Assembly (NCBI GenBank): GCA_001643675.2
Contig: LSRY02000060.1
Span: 62,001-126,000 of the forward strand
DNA: 64,000 nucleotides
From: Monocercomonoides exilis PA203
Taxonomy: Eukaryota > Protista > Preaxostyla
Direction: 5' to 3'
The translations under genes and the position numbers were made by a program. How positions within the stretch are numbered: position 1 is the first letter of the stretch; the number at the start of each line of letters is the position of its first letter. The notes below the pieces were generated by a model. The model worked only from the letters and a program-made list of their open reading frames with translations, did no database searches and was not told the DNA's origin. This document shows positions 41,675 through 63,585 of this stretch, piece by piece.

Positions 41675-44179
41675 TCACAGAAGCCAAGAAAACGACCCCC
41701 TTTGAAGAATCTGCTGCCAAGTCTCGTGAATAACGGAATTGATACCTGGCTCGTCAAATGCATGATCGCCTGCACTTTGTTTTGCCTTTTCGATTTCTTC
41801 TTCTTCTTCTTCTTTTTCTTCTTTCCTCTTTTTTGCTTCCTCTTCCGATCTTTTCCTTTCTGCTTCTTCTGCTTCTATTTCTTCTCGTTCCTCCTGATCA
41901 TAATGTGCATTGATCTCGTCTATTGCTGCACTGAGCTCTTCTGGTTTCAGTCCTTTCAATGCGATCTCAGCAAGCCTCTGTTCTTTCTCTTCCTCTCTCA
42001 TTTCTCTCTTCTTCGCTTTCTTTGCCTCTTTCGCTTTCTTCTCCTCTTCCTTTTGCTTTTCCCGCATCTTCTCCATTCTCCGCCTCTCCCACTCTTCTGC
42101 CCTTCTTTCCTGCTCTTCTCTGCTCCTCCTTTTCCGCGCTGCATCCTGCCACACAAACAGCTCTTTCCTCAAATCCACATTCCGCTCTATCCACTTCACA
42201 TCCCCTTTCACCAGATACAGCGCTGCCCAGAATGCAACCAGCACAACCACAAACCACACCACCATCGGCACCAGCGACAGCGCCATGTTCCTCTCCATTT
42301 TGTGTGCCCGCTCAATCAGCTCGTCTGTCACCACCACAGCCGACATGAACCGCTCTGCCCCTTTCCACGCCTCTCCATTCGAAGCACCAGGATCAAACAC
42401 CCCAACCCCATCCAAGCACAGAAGAGGGATCAGAACAATGGCAATGCCAATCACAGATCCAATGGCAATTCCTGCAATGCGAATGCTTTTGCTGCATAGA
42501 ACAGAATATTCATGCTCCTTCGATGGCCTCATGAAGAACACAAACACATGAATCAGAACGATCGTTGGAAAAAGAGGAACAAGTGCAACTGTCCACGAGT
42601 TTGTGGTGTTAACTGTTTGTTGTCCGTTTGGATTTCAAATAAATTTCCAAATGGCAAATGGAATAATTATAAATGAATGAGATAAATTTATAAAATAAAA
42701 CATAACAAATAAGTCACACAGCACAATTCGTGAAAGAATAGCACCCAAGCTGTTATAACACCACATATCGCAATCAATAAAATAACTCCATCCAAGTCAT
42801 CATCACCATAGCAAGCAACCCAGTTATCGACTGGAGACATGAAAAAAATTTCTCCAAGCAAAGCGAAGAGCAACCACAAAGAACTTTCAAACACTGACGA
42901 GTTTGGTTCTGTTGTTGATTGTCCGCTTTCTGCGTGTTCCTCATCAGCTGCTGATTGGCTGAAAACTCCTCTGCTTTCTGCATCACTTTTTTTGGAATCA
43001 ACAGCTGAACGTGACTTGGCCATCGGTCCATCAACCAACCTGTTGCGAATGTTGGGTGTGTAATTCTCGCCATTCATGAAATTGTCCATTTTCAAACACA
43101 AAAGATAATTGACAAAAGGGAAGCATGCCAAATAAATACCAACAAAAATTAACTTGTACCGAACTTCCTTTCGCTTCGTCAAATACAGAAACAAAAAGCC
43201 AAAATGCATCAGCAGCAGTGCCATTACAACAGTGAACTGCAATTTTGATTGAGATAAACTGAACGAAAACACCGATCTTGTAACTTTGTTTGAAACCAAA
43301 TTAGAAACATTCGGATCAGACAATTTGTCGAAAACAGGACCCCGAATAAAATTTGTTGAATAAAATATCGCAAAGAAGAAGAGGAACAAAAACGATGCCA
43401 ACGATGCCCACGTAACTGTAAATAGAAGAAGACTTGTTTTTGGATGTGTTATCGATTCTTTAAGATGATACACATCATTCCATATGCCTCGCTTGGTATC
43501 AAACAACGCCTTCGCAAAAGTTCCGTACATTTTGATCGTATCTTTCCAGCCTTTCGGACTCAGGCCAAACCTTATTCTGTCCTCCTTATTCTGCTGCAAA
43601 AAAAAAAAAATTAATAAATAATATTTGTATTTCTTCTCATCTCGACCTCTTCAAAGTTGCTCAATATTCAAACCATTTCATTGCCTGCATCAAGTGTTTC
43701 AAGGTCTTGAAACTCGTTCTGGTTCAGATAAATGTTATCCTTCAATCGAGGAAGCTCTTCAAAAACAATTTCGCGCCAGAACCTAACAATCATTAGATGT
43801 CAATAAATACAGAGAAGAAAATCAAAAAGTTCTGTCAAAACTCTTCTGTATTCAATATTAAACGAAATTGCTTCGACGTGCCCATTAGACTCATTTTTGT
43901 TTTCGTGTCGCATCGCCTAAAAATCCTGAAATCATAAACAATAAAAATAATAATAAATCAAAACGAATTCACACTTTTTCCATATCTCTTCCGGAACATC
44001 TGTTTCACCAAAGATTTTGTTCAATCAAATCAGCAAATCAGTCATAATAAAAACACACTTTTAATGTTAAACTGATCGCAAGAATCGTTTGACGAGCAAC
44101 TTAAAGATGCATTTTCGTCATGCAAATTAACATAAAATATATCCTCATGTAAATTAACCTTCTCTTCTTTTCTCTTCAT
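41675..44179 (-). CDS. F-box domain multi-pass membrane protein with charged coiled-coil C-terminus (6 exons, ~716 aa)
   Basis: Exons 44179-44059, 43999-43975, 43925-43842, 43782-43674, 43593-42720, 42612-41675; all five introns GT-AG and in phase (2151 nt in total). Spliced N-terminus FNIKNVPEEIWKKIFRRCDTKTKMSLMGTSKQFRLILNTEEFWREIVF fits the F-box consensus; about 8-10 hydrophobic segments follow. Confidence 0.75.
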
Positions 44180-44689: not shown

Positions 44690-47600
44690 ATGGCGAGCGA
44701 AGAGAGCATGTCGATGTGTTCGACATCTAGCGGGACGATGAATGATTATACTCAAGCGGAAGAGTTCAGCAAAATGGAAACATTTGGCTTTTCCCTTTTT
44801 TTCCCTCTTTTCCATCAACCGAAGCATCCAAGCAAAACATGGGAGATTTTCGTATGGGCGTTCACAGTGATTCAGATGGTTACGCTCAGTTTCTTTCGAA
44901 TTGACGTTTCCACGCAAAAAGTGAACACAGTTTCTTTGGTTTGTGATTTTCATCTTTAAATTTTTTCCTTTGAGATTTATTTATCATTTCGTAATCCTAA
45001 CTTCGATCCTGATATCTTTTTGGGGGAATTTTTATTCATGAAACTGTCAGTGCGTTGGCTTTCCAGATGGAACGTCTCTTGGATATTTAGCAGGAAATTA
45101 CGTTTCGTTTGTAATAATAGGATGTGCAATCTATTTGGTGTTGCTTGTGATGTGCCTTGCTATAACGGCGATCTTGCAAGGTGCTATTTCAGGCTCGCAG
45201 CCGTGGGTCATTTCGCTGTTACGTTGGATTGTGCACTTCACATACACCATCTTATTTATCCCATTGACTTCAATATGCATTACTGTATTTGATTGCTATA
45301 AATCTGAGGGACAAATGGTTCATCGGGGATTTGAAGGAAGCTGTTCGGGTTCATTCTTGTCCATTTTGGGATTTATTGTTTCAATTATTGTACTGGGCTT
45401 TCTGCTGTTATCTTCAATTTTAATAAACAACATGATATACAACCACAATCCGAAGCATGGTGGGCTATGGTCATCACCACGTGGTTTGTGGCAAGCGGTG
45501 GATTCGTCTATTGTGTTTGGGTGTGTGTTTGCAATGCGAACACTGATTGAATGGCCTTTCTGGCGAGGAGTGGTGACTGTTGGATCTTCTCTAGCGATGA
45601 TAGTGTATTTTGTGTATATTCAGCCGATATACAAACTGAACGGGAATCTGCTGATGGCAAGTAAGTGGTGCTTATTTGGGTTCTTGAGACTGTTCGATGA
45701 AATTTTGTATGCAATTGAAGGAGCAACAGGCAACTGGATTGTTACTATCGTGCTTCAAGTGGTTGTGCTGATAGCTGGAATCGTTGCATGTGCAGTGCTG
45801 TTGCCGAAGATTGGCCAAAAGATGAGAGAGAAGAAGTATCTGCTGACAGCTTTTGGCAGCCAGCTGTTGGACATCTACACGAAAAATCCATCTTTGGCTC
45901 TGCCTCCGCTGAAGAAGCCAGAAAGAGTGGAGCCCTCGCTTCGCTTTATCCAACAGAAAGAATATGATTCGATGATGTATTTGACATTTGCAGACTACGT
46001 CTACACACACGCACTGAAGTCGAACCCGAACGACAGCATGCTTTGCTTCCAGTATGCGACGTTTCTGCTGTCCTACCGCAAAAACTACATGAAAGCCAAT
46101 ACACTCATCCAGAAGGCGCGGTCGCTTTCTCCAGGCGTGTTTCTGAACTTTGTGCTGTTCTGCAAGGCGAAAGAGAACGGCGGGCGTGCAAACGGGCAGA
46201 ACGGCGGGAACGGGACAGGCAACATGAACACATTTGCATTCACGACGCTGATGGCAAAGGCAGAGAAGCACCATGAGCAGGCAGTGAGTTCGATGAAGGA
46301 CTTCTTCGAGAACATTACATCGATGCAGCCAGACTACAAGGCGATTCCGGGTCTGCTGAATTCGATTGTGAAGAACGAAGAGATTTCCAGAAAGAGCTAC
46401 GAAGAGCTGATTGCGTCGCACGAGCAGAACACAGGTGTGCTGCGGAGCTATGCGCGCCTGCTGCTGGACATCTACGACGACGAAGACGAGGCAGAGATGA
46501 TTCTGAACCGGGCAGAGCAGATTGAAGAGGACTACGGCTTCAGCGAGTCGATGACGCACACACACACCGGAAGCTTCAACGAAGGGTCGTTTGGGATGGG
46601 CGATGCATACGAGATGAGCGGGAGGAGAAGCGCAAGGGGAGACAGAACGGGTGCAGAACATGAGGCGAATATGCCTCGCGTTGTGAGGCGGGGAAGCTTT
46701 GAGGTGAATGCAGGGAGTGTTAAGGATGGCACCAACGGAGACAAAGGAGCAGAGGGTTCTTCATTGGAAGCGCAGAATTTGGAAGGAGATCGCGAATCTC
46801 TTGCGAGAAGCGAGGCGCAATGGCAGCAGTCTTCGAGTGGGATGAGAAGGCATCGCACAACAAATCGGAGGAGGAGAAAGAAGAAGAAGAAAGAGGCAAC
46901 AATTGTTGATCTGGTGGTAGGGGGGCATGGGGAGCAAGGGAATCGTGAAAGCGAATACAACAGGTTGAAATTCATTGAAATAGGTTTGCATATGCTGAAC
47001 ATTGGCGTGCTTGTTGGAGCACTTATTGTGTATGTGATAAAGACAAATGCGTATCAGAGCAATCTGCAGACGCTGCGGAATGTGTGCGACTTGTCTTACC
47101 ATTCCGCGCGTTCAGCCACAATCGGGTACAACTACTTAATATACGACAAGAGATACAACTACACCGATCCACCAAAGACGGATGAATGGCCGACGGGAAT
47201 GATTCAGAGGAAAGATCTGCTGAAGATGATGGAGGAGACATCGGAGAACTTGGCCTCGATGCTGGGCAGAATCCACCAGTCGACCTCAAACTTGGAGGTG
47301 TGGGAGACAGCAGATATCAGCACGTATTTCTTCACCATCGCCACAAAGAACATAACTCACCCAGACGGAAGTGTGGAGGAAGTGATCGACACCAAAAAGC
47401 AGATCCTGCGCTCATCATCGATGTTGGAGGTTGTTGCCACAGTCTCTCAAATGATGCATCACCTGTTTCTCACAAACATATCGTCTCGTCCTCAGGATCC
47501 TGATTTTCTGTCAAACATTCAGTATTTGACGTTCAACTGCCCAGTGCCAATATTGGACGGCGCAAAAAGAGTTATCATTTATTACTATGAAATTTTGAAC

Positions 47601-50600
47601 AAGCAGTGCGACGAAATTATGCTTGTCTTAATAATCATTCTTGTGACATCTCTTACTCCCCTCACAGTCATACAACTTTTGGTCTACGTGTTGTACACCT
47701 GGAAATCAGTGAAGAATCGGATGAGGGCATATCAGACGATGCTGGACATGCCGAAGAACAAGATGCAGAGTGTCATTCGCCGACTTCTGAGAGACGAGGA
47801 CGAAGAAGACGACTTCACGATCAACGTCGAGATGGGAGAGAGCATGGAGACGAGGACATTTGACAACTACTTGGACAACAACGGCATGCACAACGATGAT
47901 AACAGCCACAACGGAGAGTTCTTGGAAGATCCTGGCGCGTCTGCGTTGCGCGAAGAAGGAGACGAAAGTGGAAAAGATGACAGTTCACAGAAAGCTGTTT
48001 GCAATTCTCCACAGACATCTCAACTGGATGGCAAAGGGCCGAGTGAAATCAATACACATCCAATATTTGTGAGGCAGCAATCGATGGAGTCTCAGCAGAA
48101 GAGAAAGGCTTCTTTCAGGCAAAACGCACCCGAAACGGAACTTTCCAATGAGAAGCCAGCAACTTCCACGCTTTCGAGTGCTGGGTTTTCGATGGAGTCG
48201 TTAAACGACACTCCGTTTGCGATGGAGTCCTCGAGTTCTTTGTTTGATGAGCATCTGACGACAATTCCTTCGACACCAGGTTTGCAGCTGCCAACGCCAA
48301 TGGTCGGCGAAGAGAGCCCAAAGGGAGCACAAATAACTGAACGAAGCAACGGAGCAAGGAAAACACCACAGCCACCGCTGTCGAATATCGATCTTTCTTT
48401 GGGCAAACCGAAAGTGGAGTCGGAAGGAGGAGGAGCAGGAGCAGCAGAAGTTCTGACTAATCGATCGAAGAATAACTCAACCCCTTCGAATAATCTGCAG
48501 TTGGACTCATTTGGGATGGGGTTTGTTGAATACGAAGGTGCGTCAGTTGTAACAAGTGCCACTCCCACCCGAAGCGCAACAAGGACGCCAGTGAACCAAG
48601 TGTTTGGAAATACACTGGCTGCCCCGCTGACAATCAAGCCGCTTGGCATCAATCTGACTGACGAATTGAACAACGCACCGCCATCTCCTCTTTTTATGCC
48701 GCAATCTCCTCTTCTCACGGCACGGTCTTCTCTTCTCACTCCACGAACTCCTCTTCCCATTCCGCAATCTCCTCTTCTTGTGTCACAATCTCCTCTTCTT
48801 GTGCCGCAGTCTCCTCTTCCCATTCCTCAGTCTCCTCTTCTCGTGTCGCAATCACCGCTTGTTCCGCCTCTCTTTTCAAACATCGATATCGATTCCATCA
48901 ACAGCAATGGAAACAACAGCCAGCCGCACTTTGGTCTGACGTCTACAGCCTCGTTCTCCATCCAGCACGCAGTGTCTGAATACGAAACGGGGTCTCTTTT
49001 CAACTCGGCGCAGGTGATGCAGCCTCTATCGCCAAGAAATCTGTCTCCACAGAACAGGGCATTGACATACAGCCAGAACCTGTCGTTTCCGCAGATAGAA
49101 GTACCTACTCCGATGCATGCTGTCTCAGAGGCACAACTGAAGACTGATCGAAGCATGTTTGATGGACATTTGACGCCTACGCAGGCACAGCAGCAACAAC
49201 AACAACCGCAGCAGCAGCCTCAAGAACAACAACAGCAACAACAAAATGGAGCAACTGAAATGAAATACATGATTGATTACGATGATAGCGATGAGTCAGA
49301 AAAGGACAAGCAGATGGGGCTGATCAGAAACGTCATTGAAGATGCAGCGTGGGAAGAAGGAATCGAAAAGGAGATAGAGAAGCACGAAGCAGCATACAAA
49401 CAGTTGCCACGTCCGATATCAAAATTAGTTGTATTTACCGTGTTATTTTCAACATTGATTGGCTTAACCACAATCATATTTTCTGTTCTTATCATATCCT
49501 ACGATGTCAGGAGCTACAGGCCAATATCTGCGAACATCATTCTTTCTGGAATGCGTGCTTCAATCTTGTTCCAAATCCAGTTTCTTCTGATATCCATTCT
49601 TCAGCCGCTTCCGCTGCTGGAGACGAACCAATCAATCACGTTTCCGAGATCGTGCAATCCAGTCATGTACAACTCTTCCCATTGCTCTGGTGATCCACTC
49701 ACTGCACGCGGCATGCTGGTTCCGATGTCCAATTACTTCGAGGCAGTGCATTTGGGGTGCCACTTCGGAGATTCGGAGTATTCGCACGCAGATGATGTCA
49801 CATACGATGAAGTGACTGTGTCGCGGATGAAGAAGGAGTTCAATGTGAAGACGCTGCTGGACGATACAGAATGTTTCCTTGCTAATTCTGATGACTGTTC
49901 TCAGGTGAATCCTATGCGGATATACGGGGTGCATGGGCATCTTTACGGACTCACATCGCTTTTGGCGCGGATGAGAATAAACGTGGAGAGGATTTCGAAG
50001 ATGGATGTTGAAAACATCACGTATTTAACCCCTGAAGCACGATTCATTTTGAATGGCCTTCGAAACGACATTGTGGGAGGTATAAACAAGATGACGAATA
50101 TGATTTTGACTGAAGGAAAGGAAGAAGTGCATAAATCGGTTACTATTCTAGTCATTGCGTTTATATTGTTTTCTATTTTATTCATTATTTCAATGTTTGG
50201 AAATTCAAGGACGTGGGCGATTGAAGTGACGTTTGTTGAGAATGTTTCTTGGAGATTGCACCACCTGCTGCCAATCAAAGAAGGCGAAAAGGAGATTGAG
50301 ATGATTTCATCGATGGTGACCGGACACGACTCGTTCGACAAAGGAAGAGAAGCAATTCTGGATGCAGCACAGCAGCTGGTAACATCAGTCAATCAATATG
50401 AACGACAAGAAGTTGTGATGGATGCGTTCTATCAGCTTTCATCAACAGTATTGGCAGCTTTCAATGAGGAGGAAAGAGAAATGGTAGCGAGGAATTATGC
50501 AAACATTGAAAAGCACAAAAGAGAGCATTTGCTGTTGAGACAGAGGCTGACGCTGATTGGAGACCAGCTTCGCTCAAAGAACGATGCAGTGAAATCAATT

Positions 50601-50747
50601 GGAAAGAGGAAGCTTATTTCTTTGTTTGACATGCACTTCACAGACGAAGATATCACCTTTGCAGACACTTGTTTCGAGATGGATGACAACAATCAGAATA
50701 ATAATGATAATAACGAAAACGAGAACGAAGACATCGATGATCTGTGA
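44690..50747 (+). CDS. TmcB-like large polytopic membrane protein with TPR-like region and C-terminal hemerythrin-like domain (~1981 aa)
   Basis: Exons 44690-44938 and 45051-50747 (112-nt phase-0 intron). N-terminal TM bundle; TPR-like YEELIASH..NTGVLRSYARLLLDIYDDEDEA; two TM-flanked modules; long S/P-rich linker; C-terminal VTGHDSFDKGR...AFNEEEREM..NY..IEKHKREH...FDMHFTDED. Confidence 0.85.
48697..48868 (+). repeat. Intragenic 21-bp tandem repeat encoding QSPLL-type heptads
   Basis: About 8 units of CAATCTCCTCTTCT-type sequence: PQSPLLT ARSSLLT PRTPLPI PQSPLLV SQSPLLV PQSPLPI PQSPLLV SQSPLVP. Confidence 0.85.
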
Positions 50748-51897
50748 AGAAAATGAAAATATTACCTTTTTTTTTCATTGTTTATAGTCTGTTTTTCTCA
50801 AATTTTTGGCTGCAAAAAGTTGTATGGCCATTTTTTAGTGTAGTTATACTAGAATTTTTATTTCAGCTAGTTTTTCTATTCAATTTTTATATCTTAATTT
50901 ACATCTTAATTCCATTGTCTAATATGTATTTCTCATAAGATGCTCTTTGAGAGCTCTTGTTTTTCAACCTTCATGTATCTCTCATTGTGTTCTAAATTAT
51001 TTGTTGATTCATTAAGCATTCGCATCTGTCAATAATGAAATTTGAAGTTCTATTTTTGAAAGTTTAATTTATTTCATTCATTTCACTTTGGTATGAAAAT
51101 AAGTACTTTTTTAATTTCATTTTGTCATTTTATAGTTTTTATTATTTTGTTATTTATTCTTCAATCTTGTTATCTGTTCTTCATTAGTTCTTCTTTTGAA
51201 CAAAAACATCTAAATTCATTTGTTTCCACGAGAATGTATTTTCCTGTGACATCACCATAAACTATGATTTACTGTTGTTTTGAAGATTTTGCTTTTGTTG
51301 AGTGAAAATCGTTAAAGGAGAATTGCTTTTTATTGTTGTACATCACTTTTTACTGAACAAAAATTCATATTTTTTTTTTCATTTTGTGAATTTTAAATGC
51401 TTTTAAATTTTATTTTGAGTAAGTTCGTCTTATTTCACAACTTTTCGATTCAAAATTAACACCTATTTTATGAGGTATTTTGATTATTTACCATTTTTAT
51501 TTTTCATGGGTGTGCTTTAACTGAGCAAAGCTATATTTTATCAAGATTTGATTCATCATTTCCTATTCTTTTTTATTTTTAAGTCGTATTGATGTTTTTT
51601 AAAATATTGTGAAAGAATACTGAATTTCAACAAACTCCAAAAAGCAATTTGAAAAGGAAAAAAAAAAAAATAAAAAAATAAAAAAATAAAAAAATAAAAA
51701 AATAATAATAAAAAAAAAAGATACAAAGACGCGAATGAATGAAACTGAAAAAAAAAAAAAAAAAAAAAAAAAAATAATTTTTTCCTGATGAATGAGCTTT
51801 GTTTGCGAAAATAAAAGAAATTTAATATAGAACAAGAAGTGCAATTCATTTCGATAACATATCATCCATTCAATGAGAATAAAATCAAAGGATAGAT

Positions 51898-52530: not shown

Positions 52531-53296
52531 TCAAAATTGGAAATCATCCTCAAACGATGATGCATCACCTCCATCTCCAGCTCCAAAAGGATCGATATCA
52601 TCATCCATGTTATCTTCAAATTTAATGACTGGAACATCATCATCACTTGTTTCTTTATGATCACTTTTTTCATCATCATCAATCTCCATTGTGATATCTT
52701 CCTCGGTCTCACTTTCTGATTCTTCATCGTTTTTGTTTTTTGTTGGTTTGTATTGAAAGACATGAGTTAGAAATTCATTTATAGTCAAATTTTCATCTCT
52801 TTTCCCAATGAAACTCATCAAAAAATCATCAATGAATCTTTCTTTGACTCCTGTTCGAGGGAAACTTGTTCTGAGCAAGCTCCAAGTTCCATCCATCAAA
52901 CATGTGCAAATTCCAGAGAGAGCATCACGAAAGTTGTATTTGTAACATACAGTTAATTGCTTATATCCCAACGTCTCCAGACACTGATATGCTTTCCATT
53001 CATCGGAGTATATCATCGTTCCTTCAATCACATTTGCCTGGATGATAGGAATTAAAGTGTTTTTCTTTCTATTTTTCACTCGTAGCAGTAAACATTTTCC
53101 TTTCTTTCCTTCAACGTTCCTTTCAATCATGCCAAATATCCAAATTTGTGCTTTTTTCTTTCCCTTGTGATATTTTCTTTTCGTTAATATGGCTTCGTCA
53201 ATCTCCACAATTGTTTCTTCACCGCCAAGCTTTTGAAATTTGTCACAGCATACGAGGCTAAACTTGCACGAGCAATTGAATAATAATAACTGACAG
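52531..53296 (-). pseudogene. Merlin transposase, C-terminal catalytic half
   Basis: KLGGEETIVEIDEA...KRKYHKG...WIFGMIER...TLIPIIQANVIEGTMIYSDEWKAY; the usual VNH and IE motifs read VCY and MD; 1-nt frameshift near 53240. Confidence 0.9.
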
Positions 53297-53474
53297 ATAT
53301 GGGTGATTCTTTTTGAAAAGTCGCTATGGATCAAAAATCAATCCCATGAAAGTTAATAAAAAAACACTCCGTTACCATAATACAAATGAAAATATAAAAC
53401 TCACACAGTGATGTTAGTAGGCTCATAACAAACTTCTTTATGAGAAGATATATTCTTTTTCAAAAAATTATGCA

Positions 53475-60186: not shown

Positions 60187-62203
60187 GGTTAGTGTTTTTA
60201 TTGGCACCATTTTTTTATTGGCACCAAATTTTTGAAGTGATAAAATTCAAAAAACACAGACTCAATTAGCAAAAATAAACAAAACTTGGGTCAAATATTC
60301 TTCGAATTTTTCTTTTTCCAGAACTTTGATCTGTAGAATTTTCTTCTTCGATATTTTCCAAATCATCATGCAAAATTCTTCTAAAAACTCTTTTCTTCTT
60401 TGACTTAATTGGAAGAGTATCTTCGATGTTTTCTGTTTCTTCTTCGGCTTCGGAACATTTCGCACTTGTTCGAATAAATATATCTTCTTCCCACTTTTCT
60501 AAGAAATCCTCATTTGTGAGCAGTTTTCCGTAAAAATCAAAACGATTTGAATAAGTGGGCAAAGGAAATGAAGAGTGTTTGGGCAATTTACGTAAAACTG
60601 GTCCTGACGATCTGAACAAAACACCACTTGCATCAAATGCATTCTTTATTACTGATGGTGCGAATGCAGAGTGAAGAGCTTGAGGAAGGATGTCTGCCAA
60701 AGCCTTTCTGTTGGAAGAAGCTGTTGAAGATTGAGGGATTTCTATTGATGAATTTAAAACCGATTTAAGAACGGCAAAAACACCTCTATCGAGAGGTTGT
60801 GAAATATGTGTTGTGTGAGGAACAAATGTGATGACATCCACATTCGATTCCATAAATTTTCTCCAAATTATAGGGTTTGCACGAGAGCTGTGCGAATCGA
60901 CGAATAGCAAACATCTCTCTTCCGTCAATTTCATCCTTTTCTTTCTTTCTAATATTTCTGGAAGAAGAACACGCAAAGAGTATCTTTCGAAGAGAGAAAA
61001 GTTCATCCAACCGTTTGTATTGCTCCACACATCAAGCGAAGGAGACAGCAGAGGTGTTAACTCTTCCGGAACATTGGAACTTGGCCAAAGCACAATTGTG
61101 GGTAAAGAAAAGCCATCCGATGCAACAGCAGCTACAAGCGTCGCGTTTCGCACCCTCGAAGGAGCAAGGCAATAGGCTGAAGGAGACTCTGAGGATGTTG
61201 CAACAAGTTTTTGTGAATTTTCGGATAATCTTAGTGATGTTTCGTCTACATTAAAGATTAACTCCCTTCGGTATTTATATTTTGAATGCAAATCATCAAG
61301 CATTTCGTACCAAGGCTTTAAAACGTCCTGACAAGATGCGGCAAGACGTTTTGAATCCAAAATTTTTGGCTTTTGTAATTTCAATTCGGGCTGATTTCGC
61401 AAGAAGGAATAAGCAGCTGATTTTGAAATTTCTTTTTTTGGTGAAGCATCTTCGAAAATCTCTGAATCTTCATCTTCAATCGCATTTTCAATCTTAATAG
61501 AATCAAATAAATATAAAAGAAAAATATTTTGCAAACCAATTCTTTTGTTTTTTTCACTGTAAGATTTGTTCCACACTTTGCTTCAATTTTAATAACGTCT
61601 GTAACAATTTCCTTTTTTTCTTTACGCAGCAATGACGGTCTTCCCACTTTGGCAACATCCCTTTCACTTTTCACAGCCTTCACTGCATGGATGAGTGTTT
61701 TTTTTGTAAATTCACCGAAGTTGGTTGCATCCACAAGCCTGGCTTTTCCGTCGATTAGAATTCGCGCCATCCTCTCTAGTCTATTTTCATAAATGCGATA
61801 GTCAATTGATGCCATTTCTGCTTGCATTTTTCTTTTTCCTTCTTCAGCTTTTTTTTTGATCATAAAAAAATCAATCAATTTTTTGGGTAATGATCAAAAA
61901 AAAAGTCCATTTTAAGCAGCCAGAAGACATTTCAAGTTTTGATATATGAAGTATTTACTCTTAAAAATTTTTGTTTATTCAATTTGTTTTTAAAAAGAAT
62001 TTGTCATGTTTTTTTCATACGATAATTTCACTAACATATTTAACTGTTGCCCCGAAATTAAATAAGCACATCTGTTAATCCAATGACGATAAAAACAATT
62101 GTTTGTACACATAATATTTGTTCCCAATATCAAATTATATCTTTCACAAAGAAATAGAAAAAAGGTGCCAATAAAAAAAAAGGTGCCAATAAAAACACTA
62201 ACC
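60187..62203 (-). mobile_element. Pogo-like DD35D DNA transposon C, 2017 bp, apparently intact
   Basis: TA|GGTTAGTGTTTTTATTGGCACC ... GGTGCCAATAAAAACACTAACC|TA, perfect for 22 bp, with a second TTTATTGGCACC copy at each end. Confidence 0.95.
60266..61863 (-). CDS. Pogo-like (DDE_1) transposase, 2 exons, ~517 aa
   Basis: Exons 61863-61537 and 61492-60266; 44-nt GTTTG...TAAG intron; IFNVDET, NGWM, LFVDSHSSR, HISQPLD; 35 residues between the second and third D; no internal stops. Confidence 0.9.
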
Positions 62204-63254
62204 TATCCTCAGCCGCCTAACGATTTCATTCATCGATGCTGCTTCAAGCGTTAAAGAAGCCTCCACCTTCTAGGCATCCGAAGGGTAAATTGGTAGTACA
62301 GACGAAAATGCTAATAACTGTTCATTCCCTGTAACCTTCTTCTCTTCTCTTATTGGATTACGGAATGGTCAAAAAGATCTGCGTGCTGCTTCACTCGAAG
62401 AAGACGAAAAAGACAAAGGCGCTGAGCGAAGAGACAACTGAATTGCTTCCACTATCGCAAGAAGCTTATTGAAACAACTTAACTCACAAAAATACAACAT
62501 CTTCTATCCCACATACACTTGATCAATGTTCAAATAAGAACGTCAAACATCACAGAAATTTATTTTTTCGATCTGATTGAAAAAAGGAACAGAATTTCTT
62601 TTAGAAGGAAATTGAAATGAGAAGAAAATATGAATAAAATAGAAAATGAAAAGTTGAAAACTATTTAAGATATGATTCATGATTTGATTCAAAACATTAG
62701 ATACCATTTCTGTTAAGAATTTTATATAAAAGTTCATTTAATTTTGAGAAATGACATGTTATTCTTCATTTATTTTTGATTTCATTTCCAATTGCTCAAT
62801 GTTAACAACTTTTTGTATTTCTTTTAATTTCAATGATGAAAGAATAGATGAAAATTTCCTATTTAATAATTTCTTTTCAAAATAATCAAATTAAAACAAG
62901 TTAAAATCTATCTGTTATTTAACATAGGAAAATAATTAATGTGGAGCCTCAATTCAAAAAAATAAAACGTTTATATGAACAGTTGAAATGAAAACAAAGA
63001 AATGTGAACAAAATATTAAGTTGCTACAAAAAACAAGAAAAACAAAATTTAATAACATTGATATGATTTGACAGAGAAAACATTATATGAAATCTGTTTT
63101 ATAGAAACGTAATATTCGGAGATAGGGTAGCAAAACTGAAAAGAATAATACTCAGCAATATATGATGGTAATGGAATGATCAACATTTTTTGATCATTTT
63201 TGATCTTCTTTTCAGATCAGTTAAACGTTTGCGACTTTTCAAAAAGAATAACCC

Positions 63255-63585
63255 ATATCCTGCTCACATTAGTTAATAAACTTGTTTGATAAATTTGTTT
63301 TCCAATATGTAAAAATAAAAAAATTCGTATAATGATCCTAATTTCCAAATGACCTCTGTTAAATGCTGTTTCAGATAGCAATGAAATACGTTTTGAACAT
63401 TTTTTGCACTTCCATCTTCTTCTGTGTCCAACTTTCTCAACCTTCATGATTGTTCTGCAATTTGCACATAATTTAGGATGAAACACATGCAAAACCTCCA
63501 TTAACCAATTCCATGTTACGTCGTTATCCCTTGAAATATTCAAAATAAAAAATATTTCATCTTTTGTATCATTAATTTTTCTCAT
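63255..63585 (-). pseudogene. Merlin transposase, N-terminal half (zinc ribbon and HTH)
   Basis: ATG 63585; CANC...WKCKKCSKRISLLSETAF; ends ...TNVSRI at the insertion junction. Confidence 0.85.

Follow-up and report, generated by a model that had tools for sequence, protein, structure and literature searches.

What can a hemerythrin domain bind once the ligands of one of its two irons have gone, and what would it do at the end of a large membrane receptor? The question is raised by MONOS_3747 of Monocercomonoides exilis, a gene that a sequence-only reading had taken to encode a TmcB-like receptor ending in a half-site hemerythrin domain, possibly a mononuclear metal or redox sensor. The organism is a mitochondrion-less gut protist, and the accessible part of its genome paper describes it as anaerobic, its set of genes for oxygen stress being enlarged (PMC6759080), in line with the anaerobic host that this reading had supposed. 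Our preferred answer, to which we give a probability of about 0.45, is that the domain would form a one-metal site with an arginine in the second iron's place, and that the occupancy or redox state of this site would tune receptor signaling.

The window, by which we mean the whole 64,000-nucleotide stretch analyzed, corresponds to C59:62001-126000 of the 82.3-Mb, 101-contig M. exilis assembly, and the hemerythrin domain sits at the 3' end of its long frame 45135-50747. The gene has one intron, and its two-exon translation is identical to the database protein P0081, whose 1981 residues agree with the length of ~1980 estimated from the letters; a 112-nt intron is the sole single-intron model that gives this protein.

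44690-44938, + strand: exon 1 of MONOS_3747, residues 1-83 (translation matches P0081)
44939-45050, + strand: intron of MONOS_3747, 112 nt, GT..AG, phase 0 (P0081 match; RNA contigs)
45051-50747, + strand: exon 2 of MONOS_3747, residues 84-1981 plus stop (P0081 match; RNA contigs along its length)

The intron junction is present in RNA contigs from three of four runs of one study, and contigs from all four runs span 50102-50750 with 0 differing letters; these contigs attest the transcript and its splicing rather than its expression level, and MONOS_3747 is an expressed, spliced gene. Since the RNA contigs carry no differing letters, and since paralogs show the same pattern, an assembly or sequencing error at the codons of Arg1849 and Ala1886, the two residues that replace the missing histidines, is ruled out.

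Around the gene, membrane-protein coding frames at 41675-43599 (minus strand) stand head-to-head with MONOS_3747, and frames at 52531-53334, 60266-61878, and 63217-63585 (minus strand) resemble DDE transposases by eye (IS1595-like, pogo/DDE_1-like). A recent duplicate of MONOS_3747, MONOS_15063 (P0076; G000:C59:212712-213044, minus strand), is 96% identical and lies on the same contig; as annotated, it stops at the equivalent of residue ~1460 and so has neither the hemerythrin domain nor the second outer domain.

The receptor itself can be partitioned as follows.

44846-45824, + strand: N-terminal multi-pass membrane block, residues ~53-341, ~7-8 helices (approximate; hydropathy, conserved in the alignment)
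46200-46532, + strand: TmcB/TmcC TPR repeats PF25474, residues 467-577 (E=1.3e-16)
46971-47699, + strand: first TM - outer domain - TM module, residues 724-966 (hydropathy)
47700-49412, + strand: long inner loop of low complexity containing Pro/Ser repeats and poly-Gln (poorly conserved)
49413-50213, + strand: second TM - PilJ/NarX-like four-helix outer domain - TM, residues 1538-1804 (model; structure match)
50214-50285, + strand: LxxLLP linker joining the last TM helix to the N-terminal loop of the hemerythrin domain (in the half-site clade described below, 87-95% conservation of Leu, Leu, and Pro)
50286-50684, + strand: half-site bacteriohemerythrin domain, residues 1829-1961 (profile matches, AlphaFold2 model, structure matches)

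The assignment to TmcB, which the first reading had made by eye, is upheld by the TPR match (61.1 bits against a cut-off of 27) and by the membrane blocks. MONOS_3747 resembles TmcB/TmcC proteins (PF25474) in having TPR_TmcB above cut-off after an N-terminal multi-pass block, delimited by hydropathy windows in the protein and its paralogs, and more TM-flanked modules beyond it. TmcB proteins commonly, though not by definition, also carry PAS and/or class III cyclase domains. Unlike those proteins, MONOS_3747 has neither at E<=1 in Pfam (though a very divergent PAS domain could escape Pfam), as the first reading had also found, and ends instead in hemerythrin; across the M. exilis genome the PAS_9 profile has 0 matches, and class III cyclase occurs at four loci, none of them a TmcB locus. 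Word-based searches for TmcB relatives outside the oxymonads returned oxymonad proteins only, a result of the tool's limited sensitivity rather than a sign of absence.

The first outer domain follows a Lys-rich stretch and a first TM helix and has no Pfam match. The inner loop is conserved at its two ends only, with column conservation of 0.16-0.23 across residues 1001-1500. The second outer domain likewise has no Pfam sequence match, but in a model of residues 1525-1962 (pLDDT 86) the TM-sensor helices run unbroken, as in bacterial chemoreceptors. Its TM-sensor-TM layout resembles that of the PilJ/NarX sensory domain (PF13675); 128 of its residues align to the PilJ sensor 8wdf with an rmsd of 2.3 A and a Z of 12.3, a score within the span open to helical bundles by chance, and its nearest named Atlas cluster is PF13675 PilJ at 0.85, which is a lead only. 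It differs from PilJ/NarX, besides the missing Pfam match, in a conserved Cys and inserts. Homology between the two outer domains was considered and is unsupported by hhalign (probability 3.6%). This predicted topology would make MONOS_3747 a membrane receptor of the TmcB family that crosses the membrane ~11-12 times, its outer domains resembling those of chemoreceptors and no enzyme being attached, and the domain layout would place the hemerythrin tail in the cytosol.

That the last ~150 residues contain a hemerythrin domain is borne out by structure prediction. The AlphaFold2 model consists of four long helices and an N-terminal loop at a mean pLDDT of 93.7; its best structural match is DcrH-Hr (2avk; Z 17.5, rmsd 1.9 A, 131 aligned), followed by 4xpw (Methylococcus Bhr; Z 16.1) and 1hmd (invertebrate Hr; Z 15.9), whereas non-hemerythrin helical bundles reach Z <=12.7 only. 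Foldseek puts the same hemerythrin entries on top. Judged by this model, the C-terminal domain of MONOS_3747 is a true hemerythrin fold. In sequence, the domain matches hemerythrin models but falls below the curated cut-offs of TIGR02481 (E=4.8e-12, 46 bits against 51.75) and NF033749 bacteriohemerythrin (E=6.8e-11, 42.4 bits against 84) and below that of PF01814 (18.6 bits against 25.3), and a PDB sequence search gives weak matches only (E about 0.6).

The positions that matter to metal and oxygen binding are listed below, numbered as in invertebrate hemerythrin, with codons in window coordinates; counts refer to 40 members of the half-site clade.

50337 (codon), + strand: Asp22 (hemerythrin alignment)
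50346-50348, + strand: position 25, the Fe2 His25 site, here Arg1849 (AGA; Arg in 38/40)
50457-50459, + strand: position 54, the Fe2 His54 site, here Ala1886 (GCT; variable in the clade)
50460 (codon), + strand: Phe55 (hemerythrin alignment)
50469 (codon), + strand: Glu58, Glu1890, bridging
50472 (codon), + strand: Glu59 (hemerythrin alignment)
50481 (codon), + strand: Met62 (hemerythrin alignment)
50514 (codon), + strand: His73, His1905, Fe1
50526 (codon), + strand: His77, His1909, Fe1
50538-50564, + strand: RQRLT..D motif in helix C, clade-specific (clade alignment)
50622 (codon), + strand: position 97, the Trp97 site, here Leu (hemerythrin alignment)
50625 (codon), + strand: position 98, a pocket residue, here Phe (hemerythrin alignment)
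50634 (codon), + strand: His101, His1945, Fe1
50649 (codon), + strand: Asp106, Asp1950, bridging
50469-50651, + strand: the five kept ligands Glu58, His73, His77, His101, and Asp106 (39, 40, 40, 39, and 40 of 40, in that order)

Available portions of two sources on hemerythrins have Fe2, the O2-binding iron, bound by the histidines of helices A and B, and Fe1 by the histidines of helices C and D (PMC2556348, PMC9388753). By this assignment, both Fe2 histidines are replaced in MONOS_3747 (Arg and Ala), and the three Fe1 histidines and the bridging Glu58 and Asp106 are retained, so that the claim of a loss confined to exactly the Fe2 ligands stands. A misalignment that masks alternative ligands is ruled out at the sequence level, since helices A and B hold no other His; the one further His in the domain, in TGH, lies in a loop and is unconserved. 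Set against O2-binding hemerythrins, the domain thus keeps the fold, the Fe1 histidines, and both bridging carboxylates and lacks the Fe2 histidines, Trp97 with an aliphatic residue 98, and scores above the curated family cut-offs.

The half-site is not peculiar to one gene. Sequence searches find 36 matches to the hemerythrin domain in the genome and the TIGR02481 profile finds 58, and TPR_TmcB has 69 profile matches (in each case matches, not exact gene counts). Among 46 distinct M. exilis domains, 26 lack the Fe2 histidines, 8 have all seven ligands and Trp97, 7 keep His25 only, 3 keep the Fe2 pair but have Asp/Glu at position 101, and 2 are partial or aberrant; at least 8 loci thus retain the full di-iron ligand site. 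These full-site domains end long frames C-terminally, and most such frames have a TPR_TmcB match 3-5 kb upstream, an architecture read from the coordinates of TPR and hemerythrin matches in shared long frames. Across the whole sequence library, HMMER recovers 65 relatives, the named ones from M. exilis, Blattamonas nauphoetae, and Streblomastix strix and the rest from unnamed metagenome or run contigs; the weakest of the 65 carry canonical hemerythrin motifs, and the one named among these is bacterial.

In a tree built without the ligand and pocket columns, half-site domains of the three genera fall on one side of a branch with 99/98 support, a second tree of the hemerythrin domains gives the same picture of this clade, and rooting with canonical bacterial domains makes the full-site state ancestral. 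Because sister loci keep the full di-iron site and the branch is recovered without the ligand columns, the half-site domains are, by these phylogenies, a derived clade. A single origin of all oxymonad hemerythrin domains received weak support (80/50).

Several members depart from the common pattern. Three M. exilis loci (L044, L053, and L054, at G000:C91:576515, C25:1074464, and C2:778105) are mirror variants, in which the Fe2 pair is kept and His101 has become Asp/Glu. Three others (L024, L026, and L027, at G000:C2:90960, C58:1199922, and C58:1644283) carry His25 (codon CAC) while nested inside the Arg clade, where it is probably a regained ligand to judge from their placement. Three near-identical full-site copies (L035, L036, and L038) lie on one contig, G000:C47; in L038 the domain is interrupted by an in-frame TAG, and the frame of L035 is short, and G000:C47:1198392, like some other long frames, may hold more than one hemerythrin-like stretch. 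The Blattamonas protein P0014 (3353 aa) contains two TmcB-hemerythrin units, one His25-only and one half-site, and may represent two neighboring genes fused by annotation. In four proteins (P0037, P0041, P0045, and P0049) an insertion separates helix B from helix C.

Conservation was assessed in 40 clade members (Monocercomonoides, Blattamonas, Streblomastix, and metagenomes) thinned to <60% identity, with a mean identity of 33% and a median column of 37.5%. Against this background the retained ligands are near-invariant (see the list above), so that two findings that would have refuted the first reading, a missing hemerythrin fold and unconserved ligands, are both absent, and the second-shell Asp22, Phe55, Glu59, and Met62 are conserved at 95-100%. 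Trp97 occurs in none of the 40, versus 8/8 full-site paralogs and 12/14 bacterial domains, and position 98 is Phe/Tyr in 35/40. The RQRLT..D motif (Gln 40/40, second Arg 39/40, Asp 37/40) is absent from bacterial and full-site domains. Position 25 is nearly fixed as Arg, whereas position 54 varies freely (V13 Q8 T7 E4 S3 A2 Y2 H1), and a fixed Arg25 beside a free position 54 points to a selected replacement rather than random loss.

These data bear directly on the suggestion that the domain is a decaying or metal-free relic without function, for which its scores under the family cut-offs and the broken or truncated state of some paralogs might speak. The dN/dS of the MONOS_3747 domain against 16 measurable paralogs is 0.08-0.24, which together with the conservation across genera rules out neutral decay; with ligands near-invariant in three genera and a spliced RNA, the relic explanation is already largely refuted and retains a very small probability. 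The half-site is a real, expressed, selected, family-wide state.

What the half-site holds is a matter of inference from its residues. Under the one-metal reading, His73, His77, His101, Glu58, and Asp106 would hold a single divalent ion at the Fe1 position, most likely Fe2+, with Zn or Mn possible. The conserved Arg25 would occupy the Fe2 cavity and pair with the two carboxylates, the loss of His54 freeing room for it, and the change of Trp97 to Leu and of Leu98 to Phe/Tyr would reshape the O2 pocket, the enlarged residue 98 closing it. Such a domain would lack classic two-iron O2 binding. The three nested His25 paralogs imply that Arg25 is not always required.

A second metal might nonetheless be bound through the bridging carboxylates, water, a substitute residue, or a partner subunit, forming a labile di-iron site responsive to redox state, NO, or peroxide. 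We regard this as unlikely: both bridging ligands are retained, position 54 is Gln/Glu in 12/40 members, and position 25 is His in a few, but Ala54 and Arg25 of MONOS_3747 are non-ligands, position 54 is Val, Thr, Ala, or Ser in most members, and a cationic Arg would be expected to disfavor a second metal. On these residues, the domain probably holds one metal and serves a role undescribed for studied hemerythrins.

Three His and carboxylates are able to support reactive mononuclear iron. A single iron with an open position could accordingly react with O2, NO, H2S, or peroxide and make the domain a mononuclear gas or oxidant sensor or an enzyme, and the anaerobic host with its enlarged oxygen-stress gene set (PMC6759080) would suit such a role. 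We consider it improbable, because residue 98 is enlarged to Phe/Tyr in most of the clade and because exogenous ligands of hemerythrin are described, in the portion of the sensor review at hand, as binding Fe2 by way of a tunnel to that iron (PMC9388753), the very site lost here.

How the single metal might act is suggested by DcrH, whose N-terminal loop shifts in order with redox state (PMC9388753). In MONOS_3747, the equivalent loop is tethered to the last membrane helix by the short conserved linker. The shape taken by the bundle and this loop could depend on metal occupancy or oxidation state, and the receptor or a partner-binding surface (the RQRL motif, the TPRs) could be gated in this way. 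A pseudo-hemerythrin with a permanent structural metal (e.g., Zn2+), serving only as a docking or dimerization module that relays a signal from the PilJ-like outer domains, would account for the same evidence and is a close, somewhat less likely rival. The O2 site and its pocket are both gone, the highly conserved RQRL motif is new and limited to the half-site clade, and a receptor with outer sensor-like domains and no enzyme needs an output surface. The conserved second shell argues against it, as do the sister genes that vary their ligands in the manner of metal-chemistry tuning (His54 lost alone, His101 lost, His25 regained), neither point being decisive. Conservation of the ligands fits a sensing metal and a structural metal alike, and a buried, saturated site may be too slow in metal exchange for sensing.

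A wider version of the one-metal reading, which we hold to be somewhat doubtful, is that a bacterial hemerythrin was joined to TmcB receptors in oxymonads and there gave rise to an array of domains, some with the full di-iron site, some one His short, and some with one metal and an Arg plug, that these last would be a new mononuclear hemerythrin reporting iron level or redox state, and that the family would be the main metal- and oxygen-sensing receptor system of a mitochondrion-less eukaryote. Characterized hemerythrins are defined by their di-iron centre, and a conserved, expanded clade that retains just the Fe1 ligands, with Arg fixed at the Fe2 site, would represent a one-metal hemerythrin occurring in nature; its 135-residue domain is small enough for direct testing beside full-site paralogs of the same genome. 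The ~58 hemerythrin and ~69 TmcB matches are candidates for metal, redox, or oxygen sensing in a mitochondrion-less anaerobe. The sequence-only reading, right about the half-site, was silent on this family, its full-site sisters, the conservation of Arg25, and the PilJ-like domains.

Both parts of the architecture, TmcB receptor and hemerythrin, are known, and no description of the half-site was found. Searches on the TmcB-hemerythrin architecture, mononuclear hemerythrin, loss of His25/His54, and oxymonad sensing returned nothing relevant from a literature that excluded most subscription papers, which within that scope agrees with the earlier view of the architecture as undescribed; neither the fusion nor a mononuclear form appears in the available parts of the hemerythrin surveys (PMC2556348) and the sensor review (PMC9388753). 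The accessible text of the M. exilis genome paper mentions hemerythrin solely as an oxygen-stress protein (PMC6759080), and the hemerythrin in that set may belong to the TmcB receptor family. Dictyostelium tmcB is a regulator of the cAMP pathway, as cited in the available parts of PMC8516963 and PMC12750705. Among sampled metamonads tmcB was reported from Carpediemonas only (PMC8516963), in contrast to the 69 TPR_TmcB matches in M. exilis.

Iron-binding His are lost in 18% of bacterial hemerythrin sequences, but 63% of these changes lie in helix C, which contributes Fe1 His, and they are scattered, according to the part of the survey available (PMC2556348); bacterial changes thus mostly affect the opposite half of the site from that lost in MONOS_3747, where the Fe2 pair is lost jointly, with a fixed Arg, in one conserved, expanded clade. 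Among the closest known systems are the bacterial hemerythrin sensors. With DcrH of Desulfovibrio vulgaris, with Bhr-DGC, and with Bhr-HD-GYP, as the available text presents them (PMC9388753), MONOS_3747 shares the hemerythrin fold, with DcrH-Hr as its best structural match, the signature spacing, the C-terminal position on a membrane receptor, and an N-terminal loop that connects to the remainder of the receptor. Unlike them, it lacks the Fe2 His pair, has changed Trp97/Leu98, and has no MCP, GGDEF, or HD-GYP output, its host protein being a eukaryotic TmcB-type receptor.

FBXL5 and plant BRUTUS carry iron-sensing di-iron HHE-type hemerythrin-like domains in ubiquitin ligases. MONOS_3747 is possibly like these proteins, so far as the accessible part of PMC12022348 describes them, in that a four-helix bundle, through its redox state or the occupancy of its metal site, would control a eukaryotic signaling protein; it is unlike them in that its domain, with a single metal predicted, is nearer to the bacteriohemerythrins that bind O2.
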